This document shows, one piece after another, positions 36,677 to 61,168 of a stretch of DNA of 64,000 bases. Where the stretch lies: contig OZ287709.1 of NCBI GenBank assembly GCA_965649825.1, positions 372,001 to 436,000 of the forward strand, given 5' to 3'. A program made the translations under genes and the position numbers. Each line of letters begins with the position of its first letter. The stretch's first letter is position 1. This stretch comes from Penicillus capitatus (lineage: Eukaryota; Plantae; Chlorophyta). Under the pieces are notes generated by a model. That model did no database searches, was not told where the DNA came from, and saw only the letters and a program-made list of their open reading frames with translations.

Positions 36677-37934
36677 ATGCGCAAGCCATCACTTGTCAAC
36701 CGAACCATCGCCTTATGCATCGGCATTGCCACGGTCTCACTCTTCTCACTCGTTTGGCAATATATCGAAGAGCGGAACGCGTAATACCTCCCCTGTGATC
36801 GACATCAGTCTCGACAATTGTCATGAAGGCATGCAAGTGGCGGTGGTGGCCTCTGTCGTGTCGAGCCTCAATTCTACGTCCCGTCGGACTACGATGCTGC
36901 AGAAGTCCACGTGACTGTCCCTTGGCACGTGCAACGATTCGATGAGGACAAGGAGATTATGTTGCCCAAATATGCATCTTCAGATATCCTGCTGGTCTCT
37001 GTGTCTAGCAACAACACTTACCAGCGGCAGATCGCTCAGAATTTCACTTTTGGACGCATCTTCGATATCCATTTCGTGACGGATAGCGATTTTCCTCAAT
37101 GCGTTCTGTGCTGGGAGAAAGATCTGGATGAGCGATGTCATTGTCCTGTATTCCGCCCGCGGTGTCGACGGCATGTCTTCTACGAACGCCCTCTGGGATG
37201 GTGGTGTGCAACCCGCAAAGCATTGGTTGCCATTCAGGCATCTTATCTACTGTCCTGCATTTGATTGAGAAGTGTGAGACACAGGTCGCCCTCGATGCTT
37301 GGAAAGAAGAAAAGTGGCCCAAATGGCTTTTCTTGCTGGATGACAATACCTGGGTCAATCCCATTTCGCTTCCGCTCGCCGTCCAGCATCTCGACCCAGA
37401 TGAACCTTATTTCATCGGCAATGCGATTCTACTCTCCCTCTTGCAACGAGACATCGTGCTTTAGGTGTTGACTATGAGGGATTCCTGGCTGGAGGACCCG
37501 GTCAGTTGATGAGCCGTGGCGTCCTGCTGAGATTGCTGGGACCGCCAGTCACATCAAATGTCATCTACCGATGGAAGAACGGAACGCACAGCATGACACC
37601 TTCCTCTCAGTTGCACTCGTGCATTGCCAGAATGCAAGGCGGCGATTGGTGTTTCTACCATGGAGATTGGGCTTTAGCTGCCTGCCTCAGAGAACTCGGC
37701 ATTCTGCCCATCGATGCTGGGTCCAAAATGCAAAACGCCTTTTTCAGTCAATTCTCAGAGTGCTGTAGCAGAGAAGAGGGGACCTGGTTTGGTATCTCTC
37801 CCAAAATCGCATCCCATCTGCATCACACGCATTCCATTGGTCTGCACGTGGAGCCAGAGGAGATGTACGAGATCTTCTACCGTCACATCGTTCCTTTCTA
37901 TCGGAGACTCGTTTCGTCTCTGCGCCATCCGTGA
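36677..37934 (+). CDS. Type II membrane glycosyltransferase, GT31/Fringe-like, spliced
   Basis: N-terminal anchor RTIALCIGIATVSLFSLVW, then KWLFLLDDNTWVN..LDPDEPYFIG, LAGGPGQLMSRGVL and HGDWALAACL. Confidence 0.75.
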
Positions 37935-37968
37935 TGCGACAGCTGGTCTCCGTTTGACACTCGATCGA

Positions 37969-38736
37969 ATGCATGGACTGTACATTGCCCGTACTGTGGC
38001 AAGTCAGCTGACGATGCAGCAATGTCGAGCCGTACACGCCTCAGTGGAGATCGGTTCGCGACTGCCGCGTTTCAAGGCGCTCTTCGTCGACGCTGCCGGA
38101 ACACTGCTCTATCCAGCCCAGCCAGTGACACAAATCTACCAACAGTTTGCCAAGAGACACGGCGTGGCAGTATCGGAATCGCAGATCCTGAGCGGTTACC
38201 GCGAGGCCTTTGCCAATCCGCCTGTTCCAGATCTCTGGTCGTCTATCAACCTGCGCTACGTCGGCGATGGGAAGGTCTTTTGGCGTCATGTGGTTTCAAA
38301 GGCGACGGGCAGCGATTCCGAGGCTCTATTGGATGATCTCTATCACTACTACGAGCGACGAGAGGCCTGGGTTGTGCCTCGAGATGCCAAACCGGCACTG
38401 CTGCGTCTCAAACGCCATGGCATTAAGTGTATCGTCGTCAGTAACTTCGACACGCGACTTCGGCCATTGCTCGAGACATTGGGATTCCGTGACGTCTTTG
38501 ATGCCGTCATCGTCTCGGCAGAGGTCGAAATGGAAAAACCAAATCCGTGCATCTTCGAAAAGGCCTTAGAAGAGGCGAAGTGTGATCCGCAAGAGGTCAT
38601 TCATGTAGGAGATGATCGACGGAATGACGTCTGGGGTGCGCGCGAGGCTGGTATCGATGCATGGCTATGGGGATTGGACGTCATGTCTTTTGAAGATATT
38701 GCACAGCGTATCTTGTCGCCCTCGACACTGATGTGA
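37969..38736 (+). CDS. HAD-like hydrolase, HDHD3 family, intronless
   Basis: LFVDAAGTL, VVSNFDTRL, EKPNPCIF, HVGDDRRNDVWGAREAG. Confidence 0.92.
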   Translation: MHGLYIARTVASQLTMQQCRAVHASVEIGSRLPRFKALFVDAAGTLLYPAQPVTQIYQQFAKRHGVAVSESQILSGYREAFANPPVPDLWSSINLRYVGDGKVFWRHVVSKATGSDSEALLDDLYHYYERREAWVVPRDAKPALLRLKRHGIKCIVVSNFDTRLRPLLETLGFRDVFDAVIVSAEVEMEKPNPCIFEKALEEAKCDPQEVIHVGDDRRNDVWGAREAGIDAWLWGLDVMSFEDIAQRILSPSTLM

Positions 38737-42942: not shown

Positions 42943-43803
42943 ATGACGCATTCTAGCAGCAGTAAGATGCACGACGGCGACACGCATCTACCTCTGTGGC
43001 GTTTTGAGGTCGGCGTTGAAAATACAGATGAACTAACCGTCGGAAATGGCGCAATCTGCCTCTACACGCACCACAATATGTTTGTGAGAGCACCATATGA
43101 TGGTGCACCGATCAGAAATGACCGCGTATGGTGTCGAGCGGACGAGCACATCGTCGTGGAGCCTCTCGAAGACGATCGCTTTGCACTGAAATGTTGGAGG
43201 TATGGAAGGTATTTCTCCTGCAGAAGCGATGGCACGCTCGTCCAGTCGTCGGAGATTGGAAAAGACGAGAAGTTCGCTCTCTATTTTGACTACCGAGCAG
43301 AATACGTCGGTCTGTTCAGTACCGAACACAAGAGATGGGTCACAGCAGAGCCCGATGGAAGAATGTCTTGTAACCGAGAACATTTCGGGAATTGGGAAAG
43401 GTTTTCCGGATGGAAAGCGGGAACAAAGATTGCGTGGTCTCCGGCAGATGACTGGGAAAAGGTGGCAGAGTACGATAACACGCAGTCGGCTTGGGCACAC
43501 GAGTTCGAGTTCACTGTGAAAACTGGTTATGTCAAAGCGGAAACGCCGTCGGCAGGACTCTACATTGGCAAAGCGCGCCTCTTCCCTGGACCAGAAATGC
43601 CTGAAGTCTTTGTCTCTGGCATCCGCACACGGACTTCTACTGATTGGTCAAGGATTTCTGCGGAGACGTGGGAGGAAGCTACAGAGAGCGACCAGACGGC
43701 AACGGCACAACCCAGTTCTTATGCAACCGTCTACCAAGCCGTTGGCAAATACGGAGTGTTCGCCTTTTACTCCGATCAGATCCGCACGGTGCAGAGCATC
43801 TAA
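42943..43803 (+). CDS. Fascin-type beta-trefoil domain fused to a putative aerolysin/lysenin-like C-terminal domain, intronless
   Basis: Trefoil repeats (FALKCWRYGRYFSCRSDG..EKF; HKRWVTAEPDGRMSCNREHFGNWERF), then WEKVAEYDNTQS..FTVKTG..TSTDWS..ETWEEATE..TVYQAVGKYG. Confidence 0.65.
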   Translation: MTHSSSSKMHDGDTHLPLWRFEVGVENTDELTVGNGAICLYTHHNMFVRAPYDGAPIRNDRVWCRADEHIVVEPLEDDRFALKCWRYGRYFSCRSDGTLVQSSEIGKDEKFALYFDYRAEYVGLFSTEHKRWVTAEPDGRMSCNREHFGNWERFSGWKAGTKIAWSPADDWEKVAEYDNTQSAWAHEFEFTVKTGYVKAETPSAGLYIGKARLFPGPEMPEVFVSGIRTRTSTDWSRISAETWEEATESDQTATAQPSSYATVYQAVGKYGVFAFYSDQIRTVQSI

Positions 43804-44809
43804 CGAGATGGACTCTTAAACTTGCCTTTCTTCGCTGGGGAGGTTAACAAACTGCGGGAACGATCCAGACAGCAGTTCTCTCCGTCCTTGTCGATCAGGT
43901 CGATCAAAAAAGGATTCTGAAATGTTGAACGGAGACAGCTGGCTGTAAATGGTCAGTCTGAATGCAAAACACTGCGCGTGGTCGTGTCACGAAAGAGAGA
44001 GAGTTCACTGCCTATGAAGAATCGGATGCCATTGCCAGCAGCCTCTCCTCTGACACAGATGGAGATAGATTTTCGAAGCTCTGTACAAACCCACTACCGA
44101 TAATCTCTTCGTCTGCAACCAAAGATGTTGCACTGCATTCTCCGACGGATCGAAGATTGATCGAAACAGTGACATTCATCCCCGACGTGCCTGCCGTGTC
44201 TTAAAAGGCTGGAATGCGGTCAATCGAAGTCAGATACCAGTCCCCAGATGCTTCGCAGATGATTACTTACACACGGACCGAACGTCAGACTCGTCCGGAT
44301 GGGTTATCACCCTTCTCGCGGCAAACACAGACGGTTGGCATTCATTCTGAACAGCTGTGCGAATCAAGACGGCCGATCGAGTTCCTTGACGATACCGAGT
44401 GGACCTTCCCAGGAAGCAGCCGTCCGCGGAACTCTTTCAAGCATTGGTTTGCGGCCAGGATCTGTGGACGCCATTAGTTTGCATGGAACAGGCAGGGACC
44501 ACTCAGTTTGACAGATCTGACAGGTATGGGTGTCCTTGCGCTGACTCAAGGACGCTGTAAATCACCGTCTGCTTGGCACATCCAACACACCTGTCCAAAT
44601 TCAATTCCCCGGTTGTCGTGAGTCGATGGATTGGTAAAGGCCTTGGTACTTGAGTACGGAGATCGATGATTTTCGGCGAGCATGCATCAACACTGCTCGA
44701 CATCCAGTGCAAGGTTGCGCATCTCGAGTCTCTGTGGAAAAGATGCAACATCAGATGTCTGCGGAACAGAGACAGATCACTGGCATTCTCCGATTCATCA
44801 GGAGGTGCC

Positions 44810-45075
44810 TGTCGGCAAGATGGCGATCTGTCGATGTGACTGTCTCGTGCACGAGGGTTGCACCTTGCTTTGGGACGCTTGGGGTCTTGTCATTCGGGGG
44901 TTTGGGCTGGAAAGGGGTCTTTTTCTCTGGTCCTGGAGCTGTGCTGAGTCACCTGCCTAGGCATGTCACGTCACCACAGGGGTATTTAATGGACAATCTG
45001 CACCTTGTTTCACCTTGCTCCAACAGTTGTAACAAGTCTTCCGCTGTTCATCTTTGTCCGACCCGACCGCCGACA
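44810..45075. mobile_element. Solo LTR, family B copy 1 (266 bp)
   Basis: Termini TGTCGGC...GCCGACA, flanks GTGCC/GTGTC (5-bp TSD with one mismatch), internal TATTTAA, ~80% identical to 61169-61437. Confidence 0.85.
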
Positions 45076-45882
45076 GTGTCCTCTTCGGTCGGCCGGAGGA
45101 TGCCTTTGTCTCACGTCTGTGCGTCGTTCCGGTGCCAACTCATGTATCTTTCTAAGAGGCAGCTCTGTGCTTACCGTCCACCTCACACCAGACACAGCCT
45201 TCCATCATACCGTCGACATGTGAAGAGGAGACACTCTTCTGGTTCATGCTGCAGCTGGAAGGCGTCGGCTTTGCGGCATTGCATACTTTGAAAAACCGGC
45301 AGGTAGGTTTGCACCACAATCGGCAGCCCTTTCAAAAGAACACTCCTCAGATCGACGCACGGCATCGCACATGCTGTTTCCTCTAGAGATCTTCGTTTTA
45401 TGGAGGACGTGACTCTGACACCTCTCGGAATCAAGGCCGTATTGAGTTCTTTAACTTCTCCAGGAATGTGAAAGGCAGCTGCAGTTTAATGCGAAGAGGT
45501 GCTCATATCATAGAGATCTCCAAAAGAGACATCTGGAGTGCTGGTCAGATGGAATGTGAGAAATCGGAAGTGCATTTCCACACACTCGCTGCTGATTTTT
45601 TCCTTCGCTATCTCGTCCAGCGTTCCCTCCGACGCATTCAAAGAGATCTCAGTCGGCAATGCATCCAGTCATTACCAAACGTAACGTACAGAATCAATAC
45701 CTTGGTATCTGCCCTCCGTGCCATGTCTCTATCGAATCACATCGGGAAAATCGTGACAAGCAGAAGCGATGCGTCTCTAATGTATGGAAATGTCACGATC
45801 ACTGGTGGATGTGGTAGCTTGGGATCTATCGTTGCAAAGAGGCTCGTAATTAAAAGCGTCCACCAAATTGTGCTTTTGGGTC

Positions 45883-46165
45883 TGTGACGGTGTGCCCGTC
45901 ATCGCCTCGGGTATTCTGGTAAAGGGACGCTGCTGTCGCGGCAACCGTCCCTGTGGCGACACGCCAGCAGAGGATCACTGGAATATGCATGACGAGAGGT
46001 ATGAAAAGACCTTTACGTGATGATGTGACGTACCTTTCTCTGGAGTATTTAAGCGAGAACTGAGACGCTGTATCCGTCTAGCTATGTAATTATCACATTG
46101 CCGACGGAGTTTCCCTGTGCGACTCGCCATCCGGTCCGGACTCGGCCATCGGGTCGACGTTCACA
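45883..46165 (+). mobile_element. Solo LTR, family C (283 bp), inside the PKS KR domain
   Basis: Termini TGTGA...TCACA, perfect 5-bp TSD GGGTC, TATTTAA followed by TGTAA; removal restores VLLGRS in frame. Confidence 0.88.
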
Positions 46166-46573
46166 GGGTCGGTCTGTACACAGGACCAGCAATTCTGTTG
46201 TCCAAGATGTCGTCCAGACTGACAGTTCTCATACGATCGCATCTCTGGTACATTGATAGTGCGCCAAAGAAGACGTGTCGACGATCAGTGAAAGATACCA
46301 AGAGATCGATACCGTGATCCATACAGTAGGGGTACTTGCCTATGGAATGCTTCATCATCAATCCGAGAGGATTATGGATTTGAGTTTGGCTCCAAGCTAG
46401 GCATTCTTGCTGTGAAGAACTCCCTTTGGCAGCCTGACCCTCCACCTCCTTCACGGTGTCATCTGCATGGACACGTGTCTCTCCCTCGCCGTCCTGGCTA
46501 GGGAGATGCGGATGGGAGGCGTCGTCTCCTGAATCGTCTCCGTTTTGGCTCATCGCACAAGCACAGCAGAAGT

Positions 46574-47567
46574 TGTTGGCAGTCGGCGCGGCCTGGAGGT
46601 GGTCGACGGATGCCCCGCGGCGTTCTGCGCGTAGATACGAGACGCGCAAGACCAGAACCAATTGATTAATATTCATTGTCCTGTTCACAAATCTATGCTC
46701 ATCCACAGTTACTATCCACATGCTTCCCTGTGCACTCCGATCGGTAACTCTAATCGGCCAGCCAAACCACTGGAAAGCATGTCTTGTTCCGTCGCTTGGA
46801 TACCAGTGACAAGGAAGAATCTGATTATCACGATCCTCGTCTGCAGATGTGCAGATTCCAGCGCATCTTCTCCCGTGTCCACGGTTCGCCGACGCTTTTG
46901 CATGGTTGTCGGTCTTCAGTTCGACGATGGATGGCGCATTTTTCGCCAGACGGAGCAATCACCTCGCGCGGTACGTCATCCTCTGTCACCGCATGGTGTG
47001 TCCGTTCAGGCGTCCCATCGTCGGCCCCTTGGCTGGAGTTCCCCTGGCATGTCCGCGACGACACGTCAGCGCCACGCGACCTCCACTGCGCATCCACGAC
47101 TGCGCATGGAGTCGCCAGACTGCGACACCTCAGCCAGGCCGACGCGACCCCGCAAGACAGCACTACCGGCTGATGCGACCCGCGACAGACCTCCAACACA
47201 GCCCGTGCCGTCATTTATGCACAGGGGGGAACAAAGAGCGACGCTTCAGCAATACAATCTTCGTCTTCGGCAAACTCCAGAGGACAACAAATGTAGTCGA
47301 CAGTGTTTTTTCAACCCTCGGCAGTTATCCGTCGCCTCCAGGACTCCGACTGAGAGCTTCGTCTTGACGAGCATTGCGTTCAGCGGAAGCATTAGGAGCA
47401 CCTCGCGCTCCGAAACCATCTGTTGGCAGTCGGCGCGGCCTGGAGGTGGTCGACGGATGCCCCGCGGCGTTCTGCGCGTAGATACGAGACGCGCAAGACC
47501 AGAACCAATTGATTAATATTCATTGTCCTGTTCACAAATCTATGCTCATCCACAGTTACTATCCACA
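46574..47567 (-). mobile_element. TRIM-like miniature LTR retrotransposon (994 bp)
   Basis: Identical 147-bp TG..CA LTRs (46574-46720, 47421-47567), 5-bp TSD GAAGT, PBS TGGTTTCGGAGCG 2 nt after the 5' LTR, purine tract AGGGAAG before the 3' LTR, no recognisable intact gene. Confidence 0.93.
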
Positions 47568-48414
47568 GAAGTCTTGAAGCAAGATGAAAGTAGGCGGGCA
47601 AGGACGATGGAGGAAAAACCAAAGTTCTATCCAAGAGACAGCTCGTTGCAACGACGATAGACAGCAGATTTTTTGACAAGCAGATTGTATGCAATTCACA
47701 GACACAAGTGTAAACTTAGATGTCAAGCAAAAGATGATTCATGTGTCCATCCCTCGGTTTCATACTCAACTAGTGACCGGACCGACAGGACAAGTTAAGA
47801 ACAACCCGTGAAGTTAAAGAGTGAGTTCCCGATGAGATTCTATAAGTTTCTAAAGAACTTCACTATGAAAATCACCAATAGTTCGCAGTCCTTGTCATCA
47901 CGGCTACCTTGCAGCACCCTCACAGCCAGAGGCGCAAAACCGACAAGTGATAAACAAAATGCCGCCGATTACAATGACGTCCCATCAACGTTCCCGTTCG
48001 AATGGCGCTGCCATATTGTGGCACTTACAACGACAGCTGCCATCTTGGAACGTGTGCTACTCAGAAGGCATGTCTGTTCGCATCTGTCGCGTCGTTGCTC
48101 GGAACTGCCGGTGTTGTGGCGGGGCGGCCGCTCGAACGATCAATGCAGCGGAAGTCTTTACAGGCTCGGAGCAGAAGCATTTCAAAGTTCAGAATCGCAC
48201 ATTTATACCCGCAAATTGATGTGACTCACCGAGGCAGGTTCAAACACCACAGAAACACGCCTCAGATGAGTCATCAGTGTCTCTCTGCGCGATGAACCCC
48301 TTCACCACAAGACAGAATGACATGACCCCTTGTCGAAGACAACATGGGCCCACCCCTTTCGCTTGCGTATACTCCGAAAGCAGGTAAAACCCCCACGAAA
48401 AACAAATAATCAAA

Positions 48415-49446
48415 TCAGTCTATGCCCGAGGTGAATCGTCGCAGCGCCGAGAAGATGGTCCAGCCCGAGGATGATGATTCTTCTGTGTTCGGTTCCCCCG
48501 CTCTCTTCTGAGAATCCGATGTCGTCGGATTCGATGACTCAACCATATCCGTAGTCCGCACTCGCGGACAATCCTGTGCCAGGTGCCCCTTACATCGACA
48601 GCTGTAGCAGATCCGTCCGCGTCTCATGGCTCCGCCATCGTCTGCCGCGTCGGCCGTCTTCTCTCTTCGCCGTCGCCGCGGATACCGCCCAACGTCGTGC
48701 AACACTCGTTTCATCTGTTGCAAAGTCTTTTCACTTCGTCGATTCCCCTCTGGTTTCTTCGCCATCAACTCGGTTGTCGTCCTGACATCCCTTTGTAGCG
48801 TCTTCACCTCGTCGGCCAGTGACTGTAGACATGGCACCAAGTCAGGTGCCGAAATATACTTCTGTTTCTCCTCTGCGAAGGCGGATTCCGTCTCTTCAAG
48901 CCTCTGTTTCGTGGAGGAGGCTTCCTCGATAGCCTCGTTTGCATCCTGGTGCGCCTTGTTGATGTCTTGTTTTGCTTCGGAAATGTCCTTCTGCAGTTCT
49001 GCGTTGATGGCCGCAAGTCGCTCGATTTCTGCTGTCGCCTCGGCTACCTCGCGTCGTAAAAGCTCGACCGACAGTCCCCTTGCAATACCACTTGATTCGG
49101 AAGCCTGCAGCGTCGCTTGTAACTCTTCCTTCTCGTCTCGCAAATCTCGCTTTTCCCGAAGCCATTTCTCCTTTTCGTCTTGCGAGTCTCGCCGTTCTTT
49201 CAGCCGCGGACAAATATTCCTTAGAAACTCAAACATGCAATCTTCGTCTACCAACAAGTAGGAAAAATCGTCGTTGTGATCATCTGGCTGTATCCAAACG
49301 CGAAAACCGTGAAGTCTGGGGCACAGCCCTTCGTCTTGACCAAAATACGCAAAGAGACTTTCCTCGTAACCGCGTATACCATAAACCCCGTGGCTGCCAC
49401 CCTCGACGTGACCCTGCTCCCTTCTTCTTTGTCGTGCTCGACTCAT
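48415..49446 (-). CDS. Element-encoded coiled-coil + CCHC zinc-knuckle (Gag-like) protein, 343 aa
   Basis: Intact ORF with a long heptad-rich region and CYSCRCKGHLAQDCP. Its TGA stop is the first 3 nt of the 3' LTR. Confidence 0.85.
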   Translation of the reverse strand: MSRARQRRREQGHVEGGSHGVYGIRGYEESLFAYFGQDEGLCPRLHGFRVWIQPDDHNDDFSYLLVDEDCMFEFLRNICPRLKERRDSQDEKEKWLREKRDLRDEKEELQATLQASESSGIARGLSVELLRREVAEATAEIERLAAINAELQKDISEAKQDINKAHQDANEAIEEASSTKQRLEETESAFAEEKQKYISAPDLVPCLQSLADEVKTLQRDVRTTTELMAKKPEGNRRSEKTLQQMKRVLHDVGRYPRRRRREKTADAADDGGAMRRGRICYSCRCKGHLAQDCPRVRTTDMVESSNPTTSDSQKRAGEPNTEESSSSGWTIFSALRRFTSGID

Positions 49447-49632
49447 CCTTGACAATTCGCTTCTCGAAATTCCTTGTGCCTAGGTGTGCCTAGTCAGGAC
49501 TCAACGGGCGCAAAGCACACAGCAAATGCGCAACGTCACACAGACGGAGTTCAAACTGAGGAACGTTTAACAACGCTCCGAAACCATGTTGTGGCGGGGC
49601 GGCCGCTCGAACGATCAATGCAGCGGAAGTCT

Positions 49633-49682
49633 TTACAGGCTCGGAGCAGAAGCATTTCAAAGTTCAGAATCGCACATTTATA
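49633..49682 (-). promoter_or_regulatory. TATA box and TGTAA poly(A) signal within the 306-bp LTR
   Basis: On the minus strand, TATAAAT (49676-49682) is followed by TGTAA (49633-49637), consistent with U3-R-U5 order and a chlorophyte poly(A) signal. Confidence 0.6.
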
Positions 49683-50247
49683 CCCGCAAATTGATGTGAC
49701 TCACCGAGGCAGGTTCAAACACCACAGAAACACGCCTCAGATGAGTCATCAGTGTCTCTCTGCGCGATGAACCCCTTCACCACAAGACAGAATGACATGA
49801 CCCCTTGTCGAAGACAACATGGGCCCACCCCTTTCGCTTGCGTATACTCCGAAAGCAGGTAAAACCCCCACGAAAAACAAATAATCAAATCACCGGACAG
49901 ATAAACTATGGCATGGCGAGCAGCGCCCTCGATCATGCAGCTTTGCAATACGCTGAGCAAGGAAAGCATGTCTTGAGTACTCAGCGGGGAGCCTGGACGG
50001 GACGTGGAGTGGCAGCACAGGAACGCATCACCGTTGCCCGAGTTGAGCGTATGGGAATGCATTTGATTCAACCAGAGATGGACCTGATGACACTGTTAGC
50101 TATACTAAGATACTCTGTCTGCGACGGTTCTGCCATTGTTTACTTCAACTGGCCCAAGTTTGCAGCGGCGAATCAAAATTTGACAGCCGCCATCTTCTCT
50201 GAGAATGTCGCACATGTCGACATACCACAATAGACACCGTCACAATC

Positions 50248-51427
50248 TCAGAATGCAGTCTGACGGGTACGCGAGAACGGTTCTGGCCCCGCGGACCGGA
50301 CAGGCTGTCCGCTTCCTGACGCGACAGGAGTCCGCGTGGGCCAGGGGTATTTATGTGACAGGCCGCACCATGCTGTAGTCTTAGCTTTGACTCCTTGCAG
50401 TCCCTCCGCATTCGCACACGCGTCGGCGCGTTCGCGGCGCGCCAGAGTCTGCCGCATCCCCGTCACAGTCCCAGCAGGAATGCTGGCTGACACAGCGACA
50501 GAGAGTGTCCACAGCATTTTGAGAGTGTGTGTGAGGATGATTTTCTCATGGAAGACGGATTCGATTTTCGCGAAAGCGTCGAACCGCGCTCCGCTATGGA
50601 ATCGAAATTTAGCAAACTGTTACCGAGCACACTTGTTTTTTGACTATCCATTCTACCGTCTCTGCCATTTCGCGTCTGAAAATTCCCTTCTTCGCCCCTC
50701 AGATTCCGTTGATGTCACATCGCATACCGACGAAGCTGTCCCGGCCGCGCATACCGACGAAGCTGTCCCGGCCGCGCATACCAACGAAGCTGTCCCGGCG
50801 GCGCATCCCGACGCCCCCGACGCCCCCGACGCCTCTCCTAGCGGCGAAGTCGAAGGCCTTTGCGCCCCACCCTCAGCTCCCGTCTCCGAGATGTGAACTT
50901 GATGACCGTTGAGCACTACTCCACCCCTCGCCACGGCACGGTCGACCGCATCAGCCGCATCAAAAAAGGCATATCCCTCCCCCGTCGGGTTCCCTGTCCG
51001 GTTGTCGACCACTACAAGAGAAAAAATGACATCGTCAATATACGCAATAAGTTTTCATACCCTGCTCGAGTCGCTGCACGGGTTCGCCGAGGATTCTCTC
51101 TAGCTCGAGGTGGTTGAGTCGACGAAGAAGGTCCGCCGGGTCCGTGCTTGTTGGCAGATTCTGCAGCCGGACTCTGTGCGTCTGCTCCACCTCCATTTCC
51201 TCCCCTGGCTGGATGTCGTCGAGAGATGGTTCTGCGTCCATCTCGACGTCTGCTGGAGGCTGGTGCTGCTCTGGAGGCGGCAGTGGGGTTTCCTTAGACA
51301 AAACAAGTAATTGTTAGGGTTATAGTGGCGGTTTTGGGGTTGTGCTTACTTGGCCTGTGGCCATGGCGCGAATGCGTTCGATGGCTCTTCTCTTCGATGC
51401 TCTATCGTATGGGGTGCGTGAAGACAT
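50248..51427 (-). CDS. RRM-containing protein, spliced; 3' end uncertain, may be a pseudogene
   Basis: Canonical introns join ATGQ|ETPLP..VRLQNLP (RNP2)..RLEQ|VVDNRTGNPTGEGYAFFD (RNP1). Confidence 0.6.
50722..50833. repeat. Tandem repeat: 3 x 27 bp followed by 3 x 9 bp
   Basis: GCATACCGACGAAGCTGTCCCGGCCGC x3, then CCCGACGCC x3; in frame within the RRM ORF. Confidence 0.9.
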
Positions 51428-51527
51428 GCTGTGGCGGTTGGTCGAGAGAGAAACGAAGACAAATGGTTTGTGTAGCAGAAAACACGGAAACGATGTGGCA
51501 GAACGCAGATTAACGCATTCGTCACAA

Positions 51528-51614
51528 TGGCAGTGGTGACGGTTTCGTCTGCGCTGGCGACGGTGGTGGCAGTGGTGACGGTTTCGTCTGCGCTGGCGAC
51601 GGTGATGGCAGTGG
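51528..51614. repeat. Tandem repeat, ~2.2 x 39 bp
   Basis: TGGCAGTGGTGACGGTTTCGTCTGCGCTGGCGACGGTGG repeated. Confidence 0.9.
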
Positions 51615-51981
51615 CAGTGGGACGGTGGCACAGGTAACGCATTCGAAAAGAAGGTTTCTTTACAGAACGACAGTCGAACAACAATCCTGAAGGTTTTCCC
51701 CGCCCAGGATGAAATATGGAGACAAAACAAGAATCCGCAGCCTTCATGTCTGTGTCTCAATTTCATGAGCCTCGCGAAATTCGGTCAGGAGACGGTCGTA
51801 AGTACTAGACGGAGACAGTGTGTGTGGTCTTGTTGAAGCTTCTCACACAGAATGAACATGTCAATGGTAATCTGTTTATACCCGACAACGACTAGCACGT
51901 ATGCCATCACTCGATCCCTTGTCAAAAATCTCATCTTCCAGGCTCTTTTTTCGTTCGCGGAACGATCCTTTGGCGATTTTC

Positions 51982-53833
51982 TCACTCTTCTGTTTGCTCT
52001 TGCATTTCTCCGCTTGGTCCAGCTCCATAGGGGTCTTCCGACTGAGGGCTGCTCCCCAACACACTCAGGAGCTCACGCAATCTTCGCAGGAATGCAGCTG
52101 CGTCGCCATCGCCTCTGGTGTCTCCATCGCCCACGTCCGATCTTCTATCCAGCAGATGTGGGTCGAGTCCTTCCAGCAGTCGTCGCAGCTGAGGGAACAG
52201 TGCCCGGGAGCTCGTGGAATCCCCGTCGCCACCCATGACCCGTTCAATATCTTCCAAGGAAACGCCGCCCAGTTCGCCTAGAACAGCCAGTCTGACTCGC
52301 AGACCTCGCAAATCGACGGATCGCCTTGATCGAAGTCACCCCCACCGACGATGATCTCTTCGTCTGCGTCACCAACGAGGTTCACATTGACTTCGGAAGA
52401 CGGTGGCTCATCTGGTATCTCTTCAGCCTCGTCTGTATCAACATGTGCCCAATCCAAATCCGGAGGAGAGCGCACGGCATCGTCCTCTTCTTCATCTGAA
52501 ATAACAGATACAGGACGGAATGCAAAGACGAACACGATGAATATTCATGGTCACCTTCAGGATGCTCTTCACCGAGATCTTGGCTCTCACCTGTTTGCGC
52601 AGAAGCTTCCCCTGTTGCTTCTCTTCGTTCAAGTGGATCTGTATGATTCTCACGAGCTGGGGATGATGTCGATGTTGGTGTCTCTTGTTGATCTGCCGGG
52701 ACATGAGACCGATGCAAAAGTGTCGACACGGACAATTCCATGTTATTCCGCGTCCTTTCGAGAGCATCGCGTGCCTGTCTCGCATCGCTCATAGGATATC
52801 GCAACGACAGCATCGCGGACGTACATGCTCCTCGTTGAAACCCATGTCTATCAATTGCTGAACGAGTTCGGGCTGTGCAGCAACGCGCGGTCGATGACGT
52901 CTTCGTCCATAGAGTGACCTCAATGTCGCCTCCGGAATTGGTTCTGCTGCATCGTCATCGTCTTGATGCTCGCAAATCCAATTCAAAGCAGCCTGTGTAT
53001 AAAACCAGACGTCCACCCTTAGAGAATCGTTCACCGTGATGCTGAAAGCACCGAGAGATTGTTTCTGTGCAGAATGAGTGCCTTCCGTGCAATGTCTGCC
53101 GGAATGCCCATTTCCTCTGTCAGTGAACACATATGTTGTGGATCAGGTTCCGGTACTTGATAGGATGCACTCTCCACCCTCTCTTCCTGGAGAAAAGACC
53201 CATCCTCTGGACATGTGTCACAAACCGACACCCGTACTTGATTCTGTGGGTCTGTCGTGAGGGATCGTGTTCCCAAGCTCTCTTCCAGAGCATCAATGAT
53301 CACCTGCAGCTGATCTGCACCAAAAACAGCACGGTCTGTTGATGCCAGGTTCCGTGGACGCGGCCGGGGTCCTTCAGGTGCTGTCAGCTTTGATTCCAGT
53401 CCATGTTTAGCAGCGTAGGCTTTGATAGCCTCCTCGATTTCGACAGATGTTGGTGCCTAGCCACAGCATTCGTCCTTCCTCCATAGCTGAATCGCGAGCC
53501 AACCTCCAAAGGTTGTCTTGCTGGTGGTGGTGGAGGGCTCGGAACAAAAAGAATCACAACGGCATCACCCGATTGAATGCCTGCTTCTTCAAGGGAGCCC
53601 TCGTGCAAAGCTCTGCCATCATAGACCTGCGCACAAAGACGGTTTTCTTCAGAGACTGTGTGCTGGTTTGTTACAATATTCTGGTTGTCGGGAGTGGGTA
53701 TGTTCAGTCCTGTGAGTCGCTTCGCGGTTGCGGCCTCGTGCAAGTGCTTCTTGAATTCATCGACCGTCAAACCAGGAGGCACTGAGTGGAATTTGCAACT
53801 TCCTTGCAGTGTGCGAATCGTCAAATCGAACAT
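51982..53833 (-). CDS. UBL-UBA-UBA protein, UBAC1/KPC2-like, spliced
   Basis: N-terminal ubiquitin-like domain (VYDGRAL..EAGIQSGDAVVIL), UBA1 SLTEMGIPADIARKAL..AALNWICEH, UBA2 QQLIDMGFNEEH, acidic tail. Confidence 0.8.
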
Positions 53834-54664
53834 CGCTTCGGACTAAAATCGCTTGTCATGGCACGGCGTTCCATCGAACATGATGTGACATGACACTGTG
53901 TTTCAACACGAGATCACACAATAGATAGACGCCACGCATAGCTCAGAGGATCGGTCATCCCTGTATTGGCATGCTGTGTGTAAAGATGTGCACTAGGGAA
54001 CTGGCATCGGACGGCAGCACTGTCGACTGTGTGACCATGTCTCGGTCCCAGCGAGATGTTAGATCTATTTCACTGTGATAAGTTTGTGTGAATGAACTCA
54101 CTGTGCATGCAAGGGTTAAGTATAAACGGTTGTATTCTTGATGATTGTGTGATTCTTATGCAAGGGTGGATGCCGTGTAGGTTGCGTGAGAACGGGCACG
54201 GGGCATAAGAATGTTTTCTGCAAAGCATCGGGAACGTTGCATGGATTTACACACTCGCTTTTTGAACACTGTGCAACTGGCTGGTCTGTGTATATCTGAG
54301 GCGCCGGATTTCGTCGGAGCACATCCAAAACGCCAAACATTAACCGAAATGTATAAAATCATCGAATCTTCGCTTTTGACTGTATGTGGGTTCAGAGACC
54401 AATGAAGAATCTTGTTAAGGGGACAAACATAGTGAGGGGGTCTTTCGAAAAAAGAGCAGACATTGCCTCGATCATTTTCAAGATCTGGACATATGTTCGA
54501 GACATCGATCGGCGATTCAGATGATATCGTCTTTTCACATGACTCCCGTCAACAGTTCTCCACACTGGCTAAACACTTTGACACCAACGACATCATCGTC
54601 ACCGCCAACGCCAACAACAATGAATCTCGTTACCCACAGGAAAATGTGTACAAATGGCGATCCG

Positions 54665-55655
54665 TCAGGGTGCGACAGTTTGAGACAGAATGGTGTTCAC
54701 ACAAAAGTGCTGAAGGAAGGGAATAATGCCATTGAAAAAACCATAGGATTTTTTGAGCGTTCCTCCGAAGGCCATTGCTAAGGCACCCATCCCGGAAGAG
54801 CAGAGTGTGCGTGTTAAGCACCACGTCCCTCTACAAATCTGGAAAGATCCGTGTGCGAAGCCAATCAAAGCACCACCATAGAACCCAACCAATGCTGCCA
54901 AAATCATCTGAGCCGAAATGGCGGCCGTCGAAACGACCGTCAGCATCAGAGCGGGCAGCTGAAGAGAATTCCACAGCGATCCAATGAGGACTAAAATGGG
55001 ATAACATGTCCCCACAGAGCTCACATACCATCTGATCTTTTCCAAACCGAAACGAGCGCCGCTCTCAAAACCTTTCAATCCACGTAGGATACCTCGATAG
55101 AATCCATTTGCCAAAAGTATCATTTTCCACACCTAAAAAGCCATAAGGTCAGGCCGTGTGTATGAGAAGGGGGAGAATGGTAGTTACATCCATAACCACT
55201 TGCCAAACTGGACTCCCTAGAAGGCTATACATCAACTCCCTGGCTTCCTCAACCGTCGGGAGGTGTCCGCCCAAAAGCTTCATTCCAGAAAAAGGCGCTC
55301 GTCGCACACGGTATCTTTCTTTGCAAATGTCACACCTAGGATCTCAGGGTTACACTTCTGAGCGTGGCATCCTTCCACACCTGTAAGATTTTCTCAAAGC
55401 GCCTTGACTGCGCTGAGTGCGTTGCCATGCTCCAAGACAGCGTCGATGGATGAAACGAATGGTGCCTGTGCAACGGCAGGGCGACAGCAGTTCGCCGCCA
55501 GTCTCGCTATCGGCGGGTTGCCAACAAAAACGACAGACGCTGTCTTCCTCTTCGTCGTCGAGATCTTTGACAAGCGCCCTCTGCTGATGCAGAGAACAGA
55601 TGGGGGTCGTGCGTCCTGGTCGAGCAGCTCTTCCTCGAAATGGACGCAACGGCAT
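54665..55655 (-). CDS. RING-CH (RINGv/MARCH-type) E3 ligase with C-terminal hydrophobic segments, spliced
   Basis: CRFC..LLSPCRCTGTIRFIHRRCL..SYR|CDICK, spliced onward to the TM-rich exon at 54665-55132. Confidence 0.85.
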
Positions 55656-55793
55656 CGTGCCTGACACGCGAATCACCAACGACAACTACGGAAACGCAAC
55701 GATGAAAAGACGCCACGCATTGTGAAGACTCCTGTTTGTACGTTCGCTTTTTTCTCACGCCGCTCCGTGCGCCTTCACACCCTCTCCACGTTT

Positions 55794-57366
55794 ATGAGGT
55801 AACCAGCCCATCCTTGGTCTCAGACATGTCCTCCGTTCACACTCTCTGCAGCAGCAAAGAGGAAAAGCCAACACTTAAAGGTGTTAGCGTCAAGCAAAGG
55901 AAGCGTAACATCGCCGTTCCCTTGGACCCCGGGGCATTTGCTACGGAAGTGCTGACGGTGTTTGAAGAACACGCATCGGTTGGGAGTTCGGACGAAGAGA
56001 AGCTCGAGTCCGCCATCAAGGCGTTGGACACATCGGACTTGGATTTCAATCGCTATGGAGACACGCTGTTTGAGATACTGTTCGCTGGAAAACGCATGGC
56101 CACGGGGGCAAACCTTGTTACGGACCAAGGAAAGGAACTCAAAACAAACGTCTGTCATACAAACCAAAGGATGCCCCATCACCCATACCGCCCTGTCCTG
56201 TCTAGTTATTAGCCTGTGAGCCGGAACGCAAAGCCGTCTATCCCTACGTCAAGATCTTCCAGACGCTCGTCCGGTAATCTGTTTGACATCTGGCTGGACC
56301 TGTCCTTCGAGATGACGTGGATCTAGGCGTCGCCCTTTTCTGGTAAAGAATCTCGAAAATGTTCTGGTTAAGCTCTTAATGTCTTTGGAGTTCTTCGATG
56401 ACGTATCCCGAAAGAAACTTGCCATTGGTGAGGTCATTGTTGAGTGGGAGATGGAAGAGAGCATGTGCTGGATGTTCTGTAGCGACATCTTTGGTATTCA
56501 ATCCATCGATGCGTATTGGCGTGCTGCCCGAGAATGTCTTATCTGCGCTGGCCAATGATCGTCTGGTTCAGCGGGGAACAATTCTTGAATTCATTACCAT
56601 CTTCTTCCAAGACTTCCTCTCTGGTAGTACTTTAGATGAATTGGTAACACTTTTGACGAGGGCCAAGGTGGCGGCGCAGCTCTTTGATTTCTTTCCCCCG
56701 CAGAAACGCTCGTGGTCAGCCATGGCGGAGCATTTTAATCCAGCTGGACTGGCGCCTCTTGTCCAGTGGTACAAGAAAAAAGTGATCGATGTGAAGACAA
56801 CGGAACTTAAGGATTACCTACTGGAGCTGATCGATGAGGACACATCTCCGGATGAGATCTCTTCTGTTGTTAAGGAGAAGGCGACGGAAGGAGAATTGCC
56901 TAACGAAGATGTGCTGAGAGTCGTATGGGAAGTGCTAATCAAATCTATCAATATGACAGGAAAAAATGCACAACAACTAAGGCAGCTTCTGAACCGTACG
57001 CTCACGAACAACGCACAGCTTCTGACACACTTTGCCTCATCTCCAAAGCTCGAGGCAGCTCTCCTCGTTATCATTCAAGTCTGCCTGTAGTGCCATACGA
57101 CAGGCTAGAAGTTGACAGGACTGATGTGATAGGTTCATTGCTATGAAGATACGCGATTGCTAAAGCTCTTCTCCGACATCGTCCGCATCGTCTACGATGC
57201 TGAGATCGTGGGAGAAGACACTATTTTCTACTGGTATCGTAAAGGGAGTCATGCCAAAGGACGGAATGTTTTCCTCAAAGACATTGAGCCATTCATCTCC
57301 TGGTTAGAAGAAGCAGAAGAAGAGGATGAAGATGATGATGAAGAGGATGAAGATAATGATTCATAA
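55794..57366 (+). CDS. eIF5-mimic protein (BZW/5MP, W2 domain), spliced
   Basis: MS|SKEEKPTLKGVSVKQRKRN, LDFNRYGDTLFEIL, LVRRRPFLVK, EDTIFYWYRKGSHAKGRNVFLKDIEPFISWLEEAEEE. Confidence 0.95.
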
Positions 57367-57401
57367 AGCAGACATCCTCTCCTCTAATGATTAACATGCA
57401 G

Positions 57402-58699
57402 TCAGCTGTTGTTGTTATTCCCATTGCTGCTTTGAATCCACCTTTGAATAAACTGTGGCATTGAGCCGAAAGGATAGCCCTATGAACATTCAGCGATGCC
57501 CACATGGGCGCGAGCGTCAGATACAGAACCATGCTGTTGAGGAGGAGAGCATAACATAGCTGTAGGATGTGCGTGTAGAAGAAACCTAGACGCAGCAGGG
57601 GTCTTGTCAGACAAGAAGAGAGAGATCACGTGCACGCACACCTCTGATGATCAAAAATCCTAGAAGAGCTGCATTGACCGTCGATGCAGAGGGCGAAGCT
57701 AGACAGCAACATAGAATGTCCGAAGGCAAAGAGATCGATTCTTGCTGTTTACCTTGAATGCCACAAAGCGACGAGATCTTTATCTAGACATTAACAGAGT
57801 GAGCATCACAGCAAGACAATGACCAGGAAGCGCATACCACCAGTGTGTAGACATTGTATGTGACGAGCTTGAAGAGATTCTCTCTCAGTAAGAAGCCGGC
57901 GACGTAGATGTAACAGATCATTCCTGTGGCGTATGAGAGCGTGCATGCGATCCATGTTAACCACCACGGACATCTCAAATGCCACAGGAACCCCAATGTC
58001 AAGCCAATGAATCCATAGAGCAAGACATAAGTGACAGCACGAGGGGGTCCGAGAAGGACTGTGTAACGCGATGTGATAGAAGAGTGAGATGAAGCACGGT
58101 ATACCAATGGTCAGGAAGAACGTTGCAACGAGGGTCTTACGACTCGCGGCCGGTCCGGATCGAACAGCGGCCAGTACGAGAGGAAACGGCAGCAGATAAT
58201 GCATGTAAGCATCAAGCCGCAGGATTCCGAGGAGCAATTGGCAGACGCCCGAGACAGAGGCCAACATGGACGTCTCCACTAAAACCTGACACCATGGCTG
58301 AGCAACATGGTCTGTCAGACACCACCATACCTTTGCTGAAGGCAGATCGTAGATCTGTGCTGCCGCATCTTCTGCAGAAGATGCGTTCGATGCGTCAAAT
58401 GATGCAGCATGCAATCTCCGACAGAATCTCTGGGGTCCAAAAATTGAACACACGACTGGATGTCGCCGATGGACCTGCTGTCGATTGGAAGATCGACAAA
58501 GTGAGATGCTGTTTCTAACAGATCGAGGTCTCTCTTCTTCTGTCCAAGCGACACTCTCCGACGGAGATATCTGCGGAGTGCTACTCTTTGGCCAAAGCGC
58601 TCGTCTTTGCGTTGTCACGCAGGTCCCGCGAAGGGATGGCAATCCGAATCGTCGATCGACCGACGCTCGGACCTTCATGTCCTTCTGTGTCGCTGTCAC
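57402..58699 (-). CDS. DUF2232 (YybS-like) membrane protein with probable plastid transit peptide, spliced
   Basis: LVETSMLAS, LLPFPLV, LLGPPRAVTYVLLYGFIGLTLG, GFLLRENL; C-terminal GYPFGSMPQFIQRW. Confidence 0.8.
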
Positions 58700-58829
58700 A
58701 TCACCCAGACCGATACCAACGCATCTCTGTTGGTAAACGCTATGCGTTAGCTTAATGGCAAACGGGTAACTGTTCCACCAACCTTGGTCCAGTCAGTCAT
58801 ACGACATTAAGTGTTGCGCATGGTCGCCG

Positions 58830-60385
58830 ATGAGTTTTAGCGGAACCTCACTTCAGGAAGCCATCCGAATCTCCGAGGCTGCCTTTCCCTTTCGACGCGG
58901 TGCGTCTCCAGGTTTTGGCGGAGGCAGTGTGGCCTCGGAGATTCCGGAACCGAGCGTCCTTCCAGAACTGCCGGCAACGCATGCACAAACCGCAGCCCTA
59001 CGCCTTGGGGAGAATCCCGATGAATCATGCAGTCTTTCAGTGATGGGACGTACCGAAGCAGGTAAGAGAAGAGAAGAGATGCGGAGAAGCTGTCATACAT
59101 CGTAGGGCATCTGCTAAATGGAACACTATCCAGTCAAGATGCCATGAATCTCCTGAGCACACGCAACAAACCGCACAAGGTGTGGAGAAAACGCTATGCG
59201 AAGTTGCTGGTGGTGGGTGATGCGGGATTGGGCAAGACAACCCTCATTCGAACCCTCCTGTCCATCCCAGGGCAAAAAATCAAAGTACTCTTACCTTAAT
59301 GCCTTCCTCCGATCAATGGACGTCGTTTTCAGTTGCATGATGGGACAGAGTCCAGCATCGAGCAGTTTCGCAAAAATCCTGCATCGTTGTGTTCACAGAT
59401 CTGCTGGAGAGATGAAGAGGATCGCGTAGAGTGGTATTACACGGTGCAGGATACACCTGGTTACGGAGACAAAATCAATATTCGTCATAACATTGACGCA
59501 ATGGTCGATTTTGTGATCGAGCAGAACCAGAAGTGGTTCGATATTGAGACAAGCAAGAAACGACCCGCTGACATGTCATCGATCGAGGATCCCAGAATCG
59601 ATGTCTGTCTATTTTGCTTACCGCCCCATCGACTGCGCTACGTGGATGTGCGTTTCATGCACGAATTGGGCAAAGTGGTGCCCATTATTCCGCTCATTAC
59701 AAAGGCGGATACCATGAATATTCGCGAAGCCACCATCTACCGACAAGAAGTGCACAGCAAACTGCAGAATGTGTCACAGTTCGGTTTGAGAGGCAAGATT
59801 GGTCTGTTTGAATTTAAGAAGGAGACGATGGAACGCGCCTGGATCGATCCTTCACTATCGCAGTGCCAGATGTTGCCGTTGCTGATCGTGGCCAGCAACG
59901 AAGTCAATATGGAGCTTAACCAAAAAGGAATCTTCTGGCCAGAAAGGCAGTATGCATGGGGAACATGCGAGGCCTTCAACCCTGATCACTCAGATGTCCT
60001 CCAACTGCGGCTGCTGCTTCTGAAAGAAGGCCTCGAAGAGATTTCAGCAGCCAAACTCGAAAGGTGTCTCCCCTTCTGCATTATGTCAATTTCTGTCAGG
60101 CGTCGAGATCGTGTGCGTTTGTGCAGATATGAGCTATGGAGAAGAAAACGATTATCGAAACTCAGAATGGGATTCCATCTAAAAATCATGGTTTTGGCGT
60201 CCACTGCGTACACAGCATTCAGTGTGGGATCATCCTTAGCCAGTGGCAAAGATCCCAGGAGAATTATGATCGATGCTGCACAGCTTCTAATGGGACGGAT
60301 TCGGATGCTGTCCCGCCTGCGACCTCGCAAGAAATCTACACCCCCATCCGCGCTGTCCAAGAAACAGAAAAAGATGCTCGGCTGA
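58830..60385 (+). CDS. Septin (non-opisthokont/chlorophyte type), spliced
   Basis: LVVGDAGLGKTT (G1), QDTPGYGD (G3), RIDVCLFCLPPHRLR, IITKADT (G4), ERQYAWG and HSD septin-unique element. Confidence 0.93.
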
Positions 60386-61168
60386 GATGATGACCACTCT
60401 ATTAAGTGAATAGACGATGTGTCCGACTCCTCGTGTGAGATGACTACATTGGGTACACAACTACAAACTCTCAAGTGTAAGCTTGACTGCCATTTGCTAC
60501 TGAATAAGGGTCCTGATCGCAACCCGCACTACACGAGTAGACAGCGATGGTATCCCTAAAAAGAAAGACGGCTTCTTTGTCGCCGAGGGTTCTCTGCTAC
60601 CAGACATAAGTGCTCTTCTCTGGACCCAAGAAATGAAGGACGTGATGCATATTCCATTAAGAAGATTTTCCAATTCTGCCATCCGTCGAATTACAAAGAA
60701 ACCGTCGTAGCGGATAGTTGTGGTTGTTTATCGACGCATTTCGTCCGCAAAACCCCCTACAACGCATTCGACGCAGTAATGCCAAGATTAGTTTCGACCA
60801 GTTGTTGTGAGATTTGCAGTTCGCAAACGACGCCTGGAGCAACGGCGAGCTACTGGACTACGGAGAAATGGGCGACGATTCTCTGTTCAGCCAGGAACGT
60901 TCTGAAAGACTAAGAAGAACGCGAAACGTGTTCGGATTCGGATTCGGCAATACGGTAAGTGTATCAAACAAAACCTGGAATGCCGACACGGGTACGCATC
61001 CCTCCCTGTATCTATTCTGTGGCTTCAGAAGAAGGCGCATTCGCCGAAATGAGTGTGGAAAGGCCCTTCAGAGATGATGCTTGGATGCGTTGGCGAAAAA
61101 TCCTTCGAGATGACAGAAATGGCTGGCGGCAAGGGACGCGATGAAGCGCCTTGACGGGTGGAGGTAGG

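Follow-up and report, generated by a model that had tools for sequence, protein, structure and literature searches.

An apparently dead polyketide synthase module interrupted by long terminal repeat retroelements in an intergenic spacer of a green alga

In a 64,000-nucleotide stretch of Penicillus capitatus contig OZ287709.1 (hereafter, the window; GC content ~51%), the spacer between two convergent genes holds the remains of a modular type I polyketide synthase (PKS) that are broken up by long terminal repeat (LTR) retroelements. The left neighbor of the relic is an intact, unrelated fascin/FRG1-like open reading frame (ORF) at 42943-43803 (+), and the right neighbor is a UBA-like gene on the minus strand that ends at 51982. 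Between the two, on the plus strand, lie in this order the remnants of a ketosynthase (KS) domain, an enoylreductase (ER) domain, a complete ketoreductase (KR) domain in four pieces, and an acyl carrier protein (ACP) domain. The five inserts in the relic are all of the LTR type, with TG..CA ends and target duplications of 4-5 bp. A preliminary description of this locus had recognized a dead type I PKS with KS, ER and KR in order on the plus strand, and on this point Pfam, PDB, tblastn and family hidden Markov models (HMMs) agree. The extent given there, 44290-50233, does fall on the relic, but the KS already starts at 44208, and the ACP extends the relic to ~50650.

Remains of a single PKS module

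The pieces of the relic in the window were searched separately, and the empty sites of inserts were displayed by joining the 60-nt flanks. Family HMMs representing 150 homologs were run on the 347 stop-to-stop pieces into which the two strands of 43000-52500 divide, and a custom-written, frameshift-aware protein-DNA alignment was controlled with shuffled or reversed sequences. The best homolog is P0002 (Logan SRR23272282, 4767 aa), in which Pfam recognizes the succession ACP-KS-DH-ER-KR-ACP (DH, dehydratase) three times and no acyltransferase (AT) domain. P0002 carries the motifs NQDGRSSSLTAP, EISKRDIW and LFSSVASL.G..GQINY; the first two of these motifs and the lack of an AT in P0002 are in line with the earlier attribution of the relic to an AT-less PKS of the chlorophyte type. 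Other top matches include CAG9466967.1 (Pedinophyceae sp. YPF-701) and Cvel_19857 (Chromera velia). Chlorophytes encode PKSs in the MDa range that are predominantly of the trans-AT kind (Shelest et al. 2015, PMC4661987).

With the P0002 modules as queries, tblastn yields colinear high-scoring segment pairs (HSPs) on the plus strand, with E-values down to 1e-36, and reversed P0002 queries yield nothing below E ~0.3. The family HMMs match on the plus strand KS at 44263-44508 (positions 280-339 of 471, E 9e-20), ER at 45307-45468 (153-204 of 306, E 1e-12) and 45387-45884 (204-302 of 306, E 1e-30), KR at 45387-45884 (3-36 of 258, E 1e-7), 46260-46397 (69-113, E 1.3e-4), 48047-48112 (126-147, E 1.4e-3) and 49892-50209 (146-251, E 2.9e-23), and ACP at 50491-50640 (25-63 of 86, E 1.8e-6), with no piece of the minus strand of 43000-52500 below E = 1. 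When the inserts are ignored, the KR profile coordinates are contiguous (36/37...113/~116...147/146). Colinear alignment to the ER and KR domains of PKSs, which had been set beforehand as the test of the identification, is found in both the HSPs and the HMM coordinates. Furthermore, 44335-44495 matches the Pfam family Ketoacyl-synt_C (PF02801) above the gathering score (E 1.7e-8), the piece 45387-45884 matches modular PKSs over the junction of ER and KR (PDB entries 8g7w, E 5.7e-10, and 3slk, E 2.7e-7, by phmmer), and the four weak PDB matches of the piece 49895-50230 (E 0.01-0.19) are all to KR domains of PKSs, from the GQxxY motif onward.

The KS remnant at 44208-44493 takes in the end of the N-terminal domain of KS and the C-terminal domain up to its middle. 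It contains NQDGRSSSLTIPSGPSQ and LHGTG along with one frameshift at ~44343, and in the frameshift-aware alignment shares 39 of 91 residues with P0002 residues 2028-2122 (score 156; highest shuffle score, 57). A start of the KS at 44166-44282 in another frame, suggested by a weak tblastn HSP, is superseded by this alignment, which starts at 44208. The ER remnant at 45111-45761, corresponding to family HMM positions ~85-302 of 306, retains LLVHAAAG and EISKRDIW and includes three in-frame stops, the codons of which end at 45155, 45223 and 45306; 4 frameshifts are spread over the ER and the N-terminal part of the KR. Identity of the ER to P0002 residues 2782-3037 is 112/250, and the alignment continues through the first KR piece to 45875.

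The first of the four KR pieces (45780-45882; HMM positions 3-36) carries the Rossmann motif TGGCGSLG ... IVLLG. The second (46171-46410; positions 37-~116) reads RSVH..., CAKEDV, IDTVIHTVGVL and FGSKLGIL, with stops at 46254 and 46257 and a frameshift at ~46384; it is weak when taken alone (score 46, against a shuffle mean of 38.5 and maximum of 47), yet is colinear and has the expected length. The third (48029-48111; positions 126-147), with LGTCATQKACLFASVASLLGTA and a frameshift at ~48046, scores 47 against a shuffle mean of 34 and maximum of 41. The fourth (49893-50209; positions 146-251) covers the region from the catalytic GQINY motif, with the Tyr codon at 49907-49909, to the end of the KR, has neither stops nor frameshifts, and matches P0002 residues 1600-1703 with a tblastn E-value of 5.6e-18. 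The KR-ACP linker that follows contains two stops, at 50231 and 50261, and the ACP remnant at 50465-50650 (FLMEDGFDFRESVE...LPSTLVFDYP; score 76, against a shuffle maximum of 58) contains two frameshifts and has the phosphopantetheine-attachment Ser replaced by Phe (GFDF instead of G(L/F)DS).

Altogether, the aligned path includes ~7 stops and ~10 frameshifts. In addition, ~1.45 kb (~480 aa in P0002) between ~44494 and 45110 is deleted, namely, the rest of the KS, the whole DH and the first ~85 positions of the ER, and because this whole KS-to-ER interval is gone, the AT-less state is read from P0002 rather than from the relic. The N-terminal part of the KS with the active-site Cys is absent as well, so that the KR Tyr in GQINY is the only catalytic residue kept, the KS Cys region being gone and the ACP Ser lost. 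Neither a DH, nor the N-terminal half of the KS, nor a second module was detected by tblastn, HMMs or frameshift-aware alignment, including in 50900-51992. Judging from these lesions, there is no uninterrupted reading frame such as a functional PKS would have, and the relic is predicted to be non-functional; it reads as the remnant of a dead, AT-less modular type I PKS such as chlorophytes have. The earlier notion of a dead PKS gene can be retained as to the dead PKS but not as to the gene: what remains appears to be a single broken module, with a partial KS, an ER, a whole KR and an ACP, located in an intergenic spacer. According to a simulation on homologous intact coding sequence, ~7 stops in ~2.5 kb correspond to a neutral divergence of roughly 0.05-0.15, which is a rough figure.

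Several other features of this region belong here. The stretch at 44494-44809 (+), between KS and ER, had been read by eye as the C-terminal remainder of the KS and the N-terminus of the ER, but in the frameshift-aware alignment it scores 47, with controls at 34-36, which was judged no better than the reversed or shuffled controls; tblastn and the HMMs gave no DH or C-terminal KS match there, and the stretch is left without an assignment. A 112-aa gene-finder "protein" in a public collection, P0001, corresponds to 45468-45887 and was called on the dead ER/KR fragment. Repeats are found at 50721-50833 and 51527-51614, in the lineage-specific block described below: tandem repeats with units of 27 bp and 9 bp, after the ACP remnant, encode an Ala/Pro-rich stretch that resembles an inter-module linker of PKSs, and a 39-bp repeat follows further on. 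Two minus-strand ORFs at 50653-51301 that look like the halves of an RNA-recognition-motif (RRM) protein have no Pfam match at E <= 0.1.

LTR elements within the relic

The boundaries of the inserts were read straight from the sequence and then tested by joining the flanks. A solo LTR in the ER had been noticed before, and it is found at 44810-45075 (+): this element, LTR-A, is 266 bp long (TGTCGG..CCGACA) and is flanked by a degenerate 5-bp duplication, GTGCC/GTGTC. Its second copy, at 61169-61437 (+), is 82-85% identical and has a perfect GTAGG duplication, and LTR-A is 71% like the LTRs of an intact gag-only element in another locus (L006). LTR-B, a 283-bp solo LTR at 45883-46165 (+; TGTGACGG..GTTCACA), lies between the first two KR pieces in a perfect GGGTC duplication (45878-45882 and 46166-46170). 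As previously proposed, the removal of LTR-B with one target duplication restores the KR: the empty site is a single frame, SIVAKRLVIKSVHQIVLLGRSVH, that is, ...HQIVLLGRSVH. A full-length, diverged second copy of LTR-B (72-78% identical) is located at 61630-61912 (-) between GTTGC and GTCGC. Thus, LTR-A and LTR-B belong to repeated families with their own duplications.

The third insert, LTR-C, is a candidate solo LTR at 46411-48023, with 614 bp divided between 46411-46573 and 47573-48023 (TGTGAAG..TGTGGCA) and a duplication that agrees in 4 of 5 positions (CTTGC/CTTAC). Once LTR-C is taken out, the KR reads FGSKLGILATTAAIL, then, after a frameshift, GTCATQKACLFAS, compared to FGPKLGFFQSIASFLGLFPTCQYVLFSS in P0002, with essentially equal spacing. 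No second copy, and with it no sign of a repeated family, was seen in the window or in the fetched loci, so LTR-C as a solo LTR is a structural call only. An intron at 46411-48023 was considered and rejected: the homologs are intron-less over 14 kb, and an insertion accounts better for the TG..CA ends, the restored spacing and a duplication that agrees in 4 of 5 positions.

Nested in LTR-C is an element of the terminal-repeat retrotransposon in miniature (TRIM) class at 46574-47567 (-). The preliminary description had correctly placed a TRIM between the KR pieces but had missed the surrounding insert. The TRIM is 994 bp long, with 147-bp LTRs that are 100% identical and a perfect GAAGT duplication, and combines short LTRs, a target duplication, small size and the lack of an ORF with a motif resembling a primer binding site (PBS), TGGTTTCGGAGCG, at 47406-47418 (-), and a short purine run, AGGGAAGCA, ahead of the 3' LTR, as in a polypurine tract (PPT). 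Its internal region shows no similarity to Gag, and no second copy was seen. With 700 bp of internal sequence, it is presumably at the large end of the TRIM size range.

The fifth insert, at 48112-49892 (-), is a gag-only LTR retrotransposon of the type known as TR-GAG, a terminal-repeat retrotransposon with a GAG domain. The element is 1781 bp long, and its 306-bp LTRs (48112-48417 and 49587-49892; TGTTG...AATCA) are 100% identical, with the 4-bp duplication CCGG on both sides. Here, too, the prediction that removal of the element with one CCGG restores the GQINY region holds, the empty site being ...LFASVASLLGTAGQINYGMASSALD, also given as CATQKACLFASVASLLGTAGQINYGMASSALD. The gag ORF at 48415-49455 (-) encodes 346 aa with a CCHC knuckle, and its stop codon consists of the first three bases of the 3' LTR; in Pfam, there is a weak zf-CCHC match (E 0.042) and no significant match to a gag domain. 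The internal region of 1169 bp leaves no room for pol. The gag family comprises 33 clusters of 219-505 aa, none of which is a gag-pol fusion (0/33), and the cluster of this element has 6 members with at least 90% identity on 6 contigs. A DNA copy that is 98% identical occupies 3628-5338 of the locus L005.

The same PBS-like motif TGGTTTCGGAGCG abuts the 5' LTR of the gag-only element at 49574-49586 (-) and is present again in the TRIM and L005, with the variant TGGTTTCGGAGC in L006; the chance expectation is 0.1 per window for the 15-nt pattern that was searched. We take this motif to resemble the initiator-Met PBS of plants. Scans of the window for tRNAs and with Rfam found nothing, and hence no tRNA in the window to pair with it. 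A further match with one mismatch, at 63001-63015 (-), is inside a DNA_pol_E_B coding exon and was judged to be due to chance. No PPT was found ahead of the 3' LTR of the gag-only element, where ...CACCTCGGGCATAGAC is not purine-rich.

Two observations at other loci concern this family. At L006 6579-8368, between radical-SAM and P450 genes, there is a canonical gag-only LTR element (gag 67% identical at the aa level) with identical 265-bp LTRs, a CCCGC duplication, the PBS TGGTTTCGGAGC (12/13 nt of the motif) and a PPT-like run, GGCGGGAAGCGTGG. At L005 2405-3732, two RVT_1 ORFs are located directly upstream of the 98% identical, 5'-truncated gag-only copy; these ORFs may belong to an unrelated retroelement that truncated the copy or might lead to the autonomous partner.

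Differences in age among the insertions, as claimed in the preliminary description, show in the LTR pairs (identical in two insertions), in nesting (one insertion) and in the target duplications (degenerate in two). Its position inside LTR-C makes the TRIM the younger of the two. The claim that decay preceded insertion stands for the TRIM and the TR-GAG element: with 0 differences between their LTRs compared to a relic divergence of ~0.05-0.15, both would have reached the site after the death of the PKS. For LTR-A, LTR-B and LTR-C, either order is compatible with the data, and these solo LTRs could be as old as the death of the PKS.

Absence of the block from a close relative

A close relative is represented by two contigs of ENA ERZ26696514, L004 and L008, which are taken from contigs of 814 kb and 1.23 Mb, respectively. 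These align with the window at 41546-~44196 and 51993-60649, with 74-87% nucleotide identity, and between the aligned flanks carry only ~80-180 bp compared to ~44200-51992 in the window. The PKS relic, the five inserts and ~1.3 kb of unassigned sequence therefore make up a lineage-specific block of 7.8 kb (44200-51992). The host is most likely a green alga in or near Bryopsidales, given that the named homologs of the septin encoded in the exon 59333-60385 are all from Chlorophyta (~41-51%); the closest are those of Caulerpa lentillifera and Ostreobium quekettii (65%), and the septin of the relative is 96% identical to that in the window.

The block overlaps an inverted duplication of 573 bp (17474-18046 and 51923-52495; 98% identity) that lacks hallmarks of transposable elements (TEs) at its ends. 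In one of the copies, 51993-52495 is the syntenic 3' end of the UBA-like gene, and since 70 bp of the lineage-specific block belong to the duplicated sequence, the block is older than this recent event. The rest of the window is gene-dense and looks intact, with, for example, a HAD hydrolase (Pfam) at 37714-38736 (+); other genes are what we take to be a MORN-repeat protein at 5281-6363 (-), a fumarate-reductase-like flavoprotein exon at 8129-8794 (+) and an AAR2-like ORF at 22920-24050 (+).

The syntenic site of the relative lacks the block, so that the loss of a pathway copy proposed in the preliminary description is plausible only: the relic could have formed in place or arrived as a fragment. 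We put at even odds the possibility that a full, perhaps giant, ancestral PKS was located at this site, was whittled down to one module here and was wholly deleted in the relative. The searches for a parent are in accord with such a history. A k-mer search of a 5.8-billion-protein collection, which includes this assembly and that of the relative, returned only P0001, the window's own call; HMMER, run exhaustively on 1.84 billion representatives with the 166-aa, stop-free piece 45387-45884 as the query, gave 1,067 matches, and the best identity of a relic piece in this representative library is 41%; all matches in a scan of JGI metagenomes are at most 40% identical. Across the three collections, no protein or contig exceeded ~45% identity to the relic, and the intact paralog or ortholog that had been suggested as a search target, a close parent, did not turn up there. 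Moreover, the neutral age of the relic (d ~0.05-0.15) and the per-lineage divergence from the relative (74-87% nucleotide identity) are similar in magnitude, and the shared left boundary would follow if deletions had halted at the conserved 3' part of the upstream gene. However, decay in place requires that one lineage deleted tens of kb and that the other lost the PKS entirely, and the PKS homology, which starts (44208) ~10 bp from the left synteny break (~44196), is more simply explained by an insertion.

Alternatively, with a probability that we consider appreciable but short of even, a fragment from the middle of a KS to a linker after the ACP, perhaps with the ~1.3 kb of other sequence, was copied or translocated to this site after the split of the two lineages, dead on arrival, and subsequently received the TEs. 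The absence of the block from both contigs of the relative would fit, as would the coincidence of the start of PKS homology with the left breakpoint and the location of both ends inside a module, and algal PKSs are known to evolve through module duplication (PMC4661987). A giant PKS of the relative (at least 14,159 aa) is only ~13 kb off, past the septin gene, where synteny breaks (60649). As a donor, this PKS was rejected on the basis of its first 2,245 aa, whose identity to the relic (only 28-51%) does not exceed that of unrelated algal PKSs, and no other donor was found. The block ends without terminal repeats or a target duplication, which also speaks against an insertion, and because L004 and L008 are 99% identical to each other in this region, they amount to one comparator that provides no polarity.

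The two genomes also differ beyond the septin gene. In the relative, this gene is followed by PDCD2_C and AMP-binding ORFs and a giant ORF with KS, ER, KR and ACP domains (at least 9,951 and at least 14,159 aa); the giant PKS-like ORF with the AMP-binding ORFs (L004 12659-20867, L008 12452-20660) is ~3 kb downstream of the septin gene and is colinear with the PKS of the locus L002, at 41% identity. In the window (60649-62888), synteny is lost at 60649, where the second copies of LTR-A and LTR-B are found, and the sequence continues with DNA_pol_E_B and GAPDH. This difference may reflect a species-specific loss or rearrangement of an MDa PKS locus. A bolder reading, which we entertain only tentatively and consider doubtful, is that PKS genes of the MDa class have turned over very recently, at the species level, in siphonous, Bryopsidales-like algae: the relative would have kept its PKS of at least 14,159 aa ~3 kb past the septin gene, this genome would have only solo LTRs there and, on the other side at a distance of 10 kb, would retain the final module of a PKS that has no surviving close relative anywhere, and the debris would have been colonized by an active network of pol-less gag-only and TRIM elements that share one PBS, the first outside angiosperms.

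Accumulation of inserts and comparison with known systems

We assign a probability of about 0.85 to the interpretation that the locus is a non-functional, single-module relic of an AT-less PKS in an intergenic spacer that accumulates LTR-retroelement inserts as neutral DNA. The relic would be selectively neutral within a gene-dense stretch and, because of this neutrality, which we infer to be the cause of the accumulation, LTR-retroelement integrations that are purged elsewhere would survive here. Four independent integrations into the ~2.5-kb relic and one nested integration would have occurred, each made by a retroelement integrase, which would account for the TG..CA ends and for target duplications of 4-5 bp. 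Through LTR-LTR recombination, two or three old inserts would have collapsed to solo LTRs, whereas the two youngest, the TRIM and the TR-GAG-type element, would have stayed complete with identical LTRs. Both of the latter share the PBS-like motif with the related gag-only family and therefore probably were mobilized in trans by an autonomous element that is not seen here. TEs account for 61% of 44208-50650, and the 11.2 kb of flanks that are alignable with the relative contain no large lineage-specific insert; by our own arithmetic, the chance that all 4 of 4 independent sites fall in the relic, if distributed at random over the relic and the flanks, which are mostly genes, is ~1e-3.

Several points weigh against this interpretation. 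The enrichment is biased upward because TE detection outside the relic is incomplete, with solo LTRs of single-copy families being missed. LTR-C is supported by structure alone, and the TR-GAG element in the window has no clear PPT and a 4-bp rather than a 5-bp duplication. The interpretation does not account for 44494-44809 and ~1.1 kb at 50900-51992, and no parent or ortholog above ~45% identity was found.

The clustering of the inserts might instead be caused by targeted integration, with the integrase favoring certain chromatin or sequences, or with earlier TE copies as favored targets. Copies of LTR-A and LTR-B are found side by side again at 61169-61912, the TRIM is nested in LTR-C, and both copies of LTR-A are preceded by GGAGGT. 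Nevertheless, this explanation appears unlikely to us: the duplications GTGCC, GGGTC, CTTGC, GAAGT and CCGG have no common motif, other copies adjoin ordinary genes (radical-SAM and P450 in L006), and only a handful of sites is involved. An assembly artefact is far less probable still: although the source is a metagenome assembly (ENA ERZ25074695, the 211,840-bp contig ctg340026_48x_l) in which PKS fragments and repeats could have been wrongly joined, identical LTR pairs being classic points of collapse or joining, target duplications match at every insert, the flanks resume the same domain at the expected profile position, a pattern not expected from chimeric joins, and synteny of the outer flanks extends to an independently made assembly.

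Under the interpretation of neutral accumulation, the locus is a textbook genomic fossil, dead coding DNA that serves as a safe landing place for retroelements, and is also of modest practical use. The exact boundaries, duplications and shared PBS-like motif of previously unannotated LTR families can inform the repeat annotation of Bryopsidales-like genomes, and gag-only elements are extended past flowering plants. The presence/absence variation of giant PKS sequence among close algae is relevant to the gain and loss of polyketide pathways, and P0001 is a caution for genome mining, showing how prokaryotic gene callers applied to metagenome contigs turn relic fragments into "proteins".

The locus is a new instance of known things, an ordinary case of genome decay that is well resolved, and not a new kind of system. 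The relic is like AT-less chlorophyte PKSs in the KS-(DH)-ER-KR-ACP order (the absence of AT being read in P0002), in its 37-45% identity to the P0002 modules and in the shared motifs NQDGRSSSLT(A/I)P, EISKRDIW, LF(S/A)SVASLLG..GQINY and LPSTLVFDYP. Unlike these PKSs, it consists of about one module, with stops and frameshifts, has lost the DH and most of the KS, and lacks the ACP Ser.

TR-GAG elements, terminal-repeat retrotransposons with a GAG domain, are described from angiosperms, where the target duplication is 5 bp (Chaparro et al. 2015, PMC4350172). The gag-only element is like these in its size below 4 kb, the TG..CA LTRs, the target duplication and the single Gag-like ORF with a CCHC knuckle, without pol and with the autonomous partner unseen, and has a PBS-like motif at the 5' LTR, where TR-GAGs have the PBS. 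It differs in its occurrence in a siphonous green alga, in the 4-bp duplication, in the lack of an evident PPT, in the ORF that runs into the 3' LTR and in a Gag without a significant Pfam gag-domain match. The TRIM resembles its class in the 147-bp identical TG..CA LTRs, the 5-bp duplication, the PBS-like motif, the purine run and the absence of coding sequence; apart from the PBS motif, the TRIM and the gag-only element share no sequence. Finally, the set of inserts resembles solo LTRs and nested TEs in pseudogenes or "safe-haven" DNA in the target duplications, the nesting of young in old elements and the accumulation in non-functional DNA, and differs from the usual safe-haven cases only in density, with five events in ~2.5 kb of original sequence within a gene-dense region.

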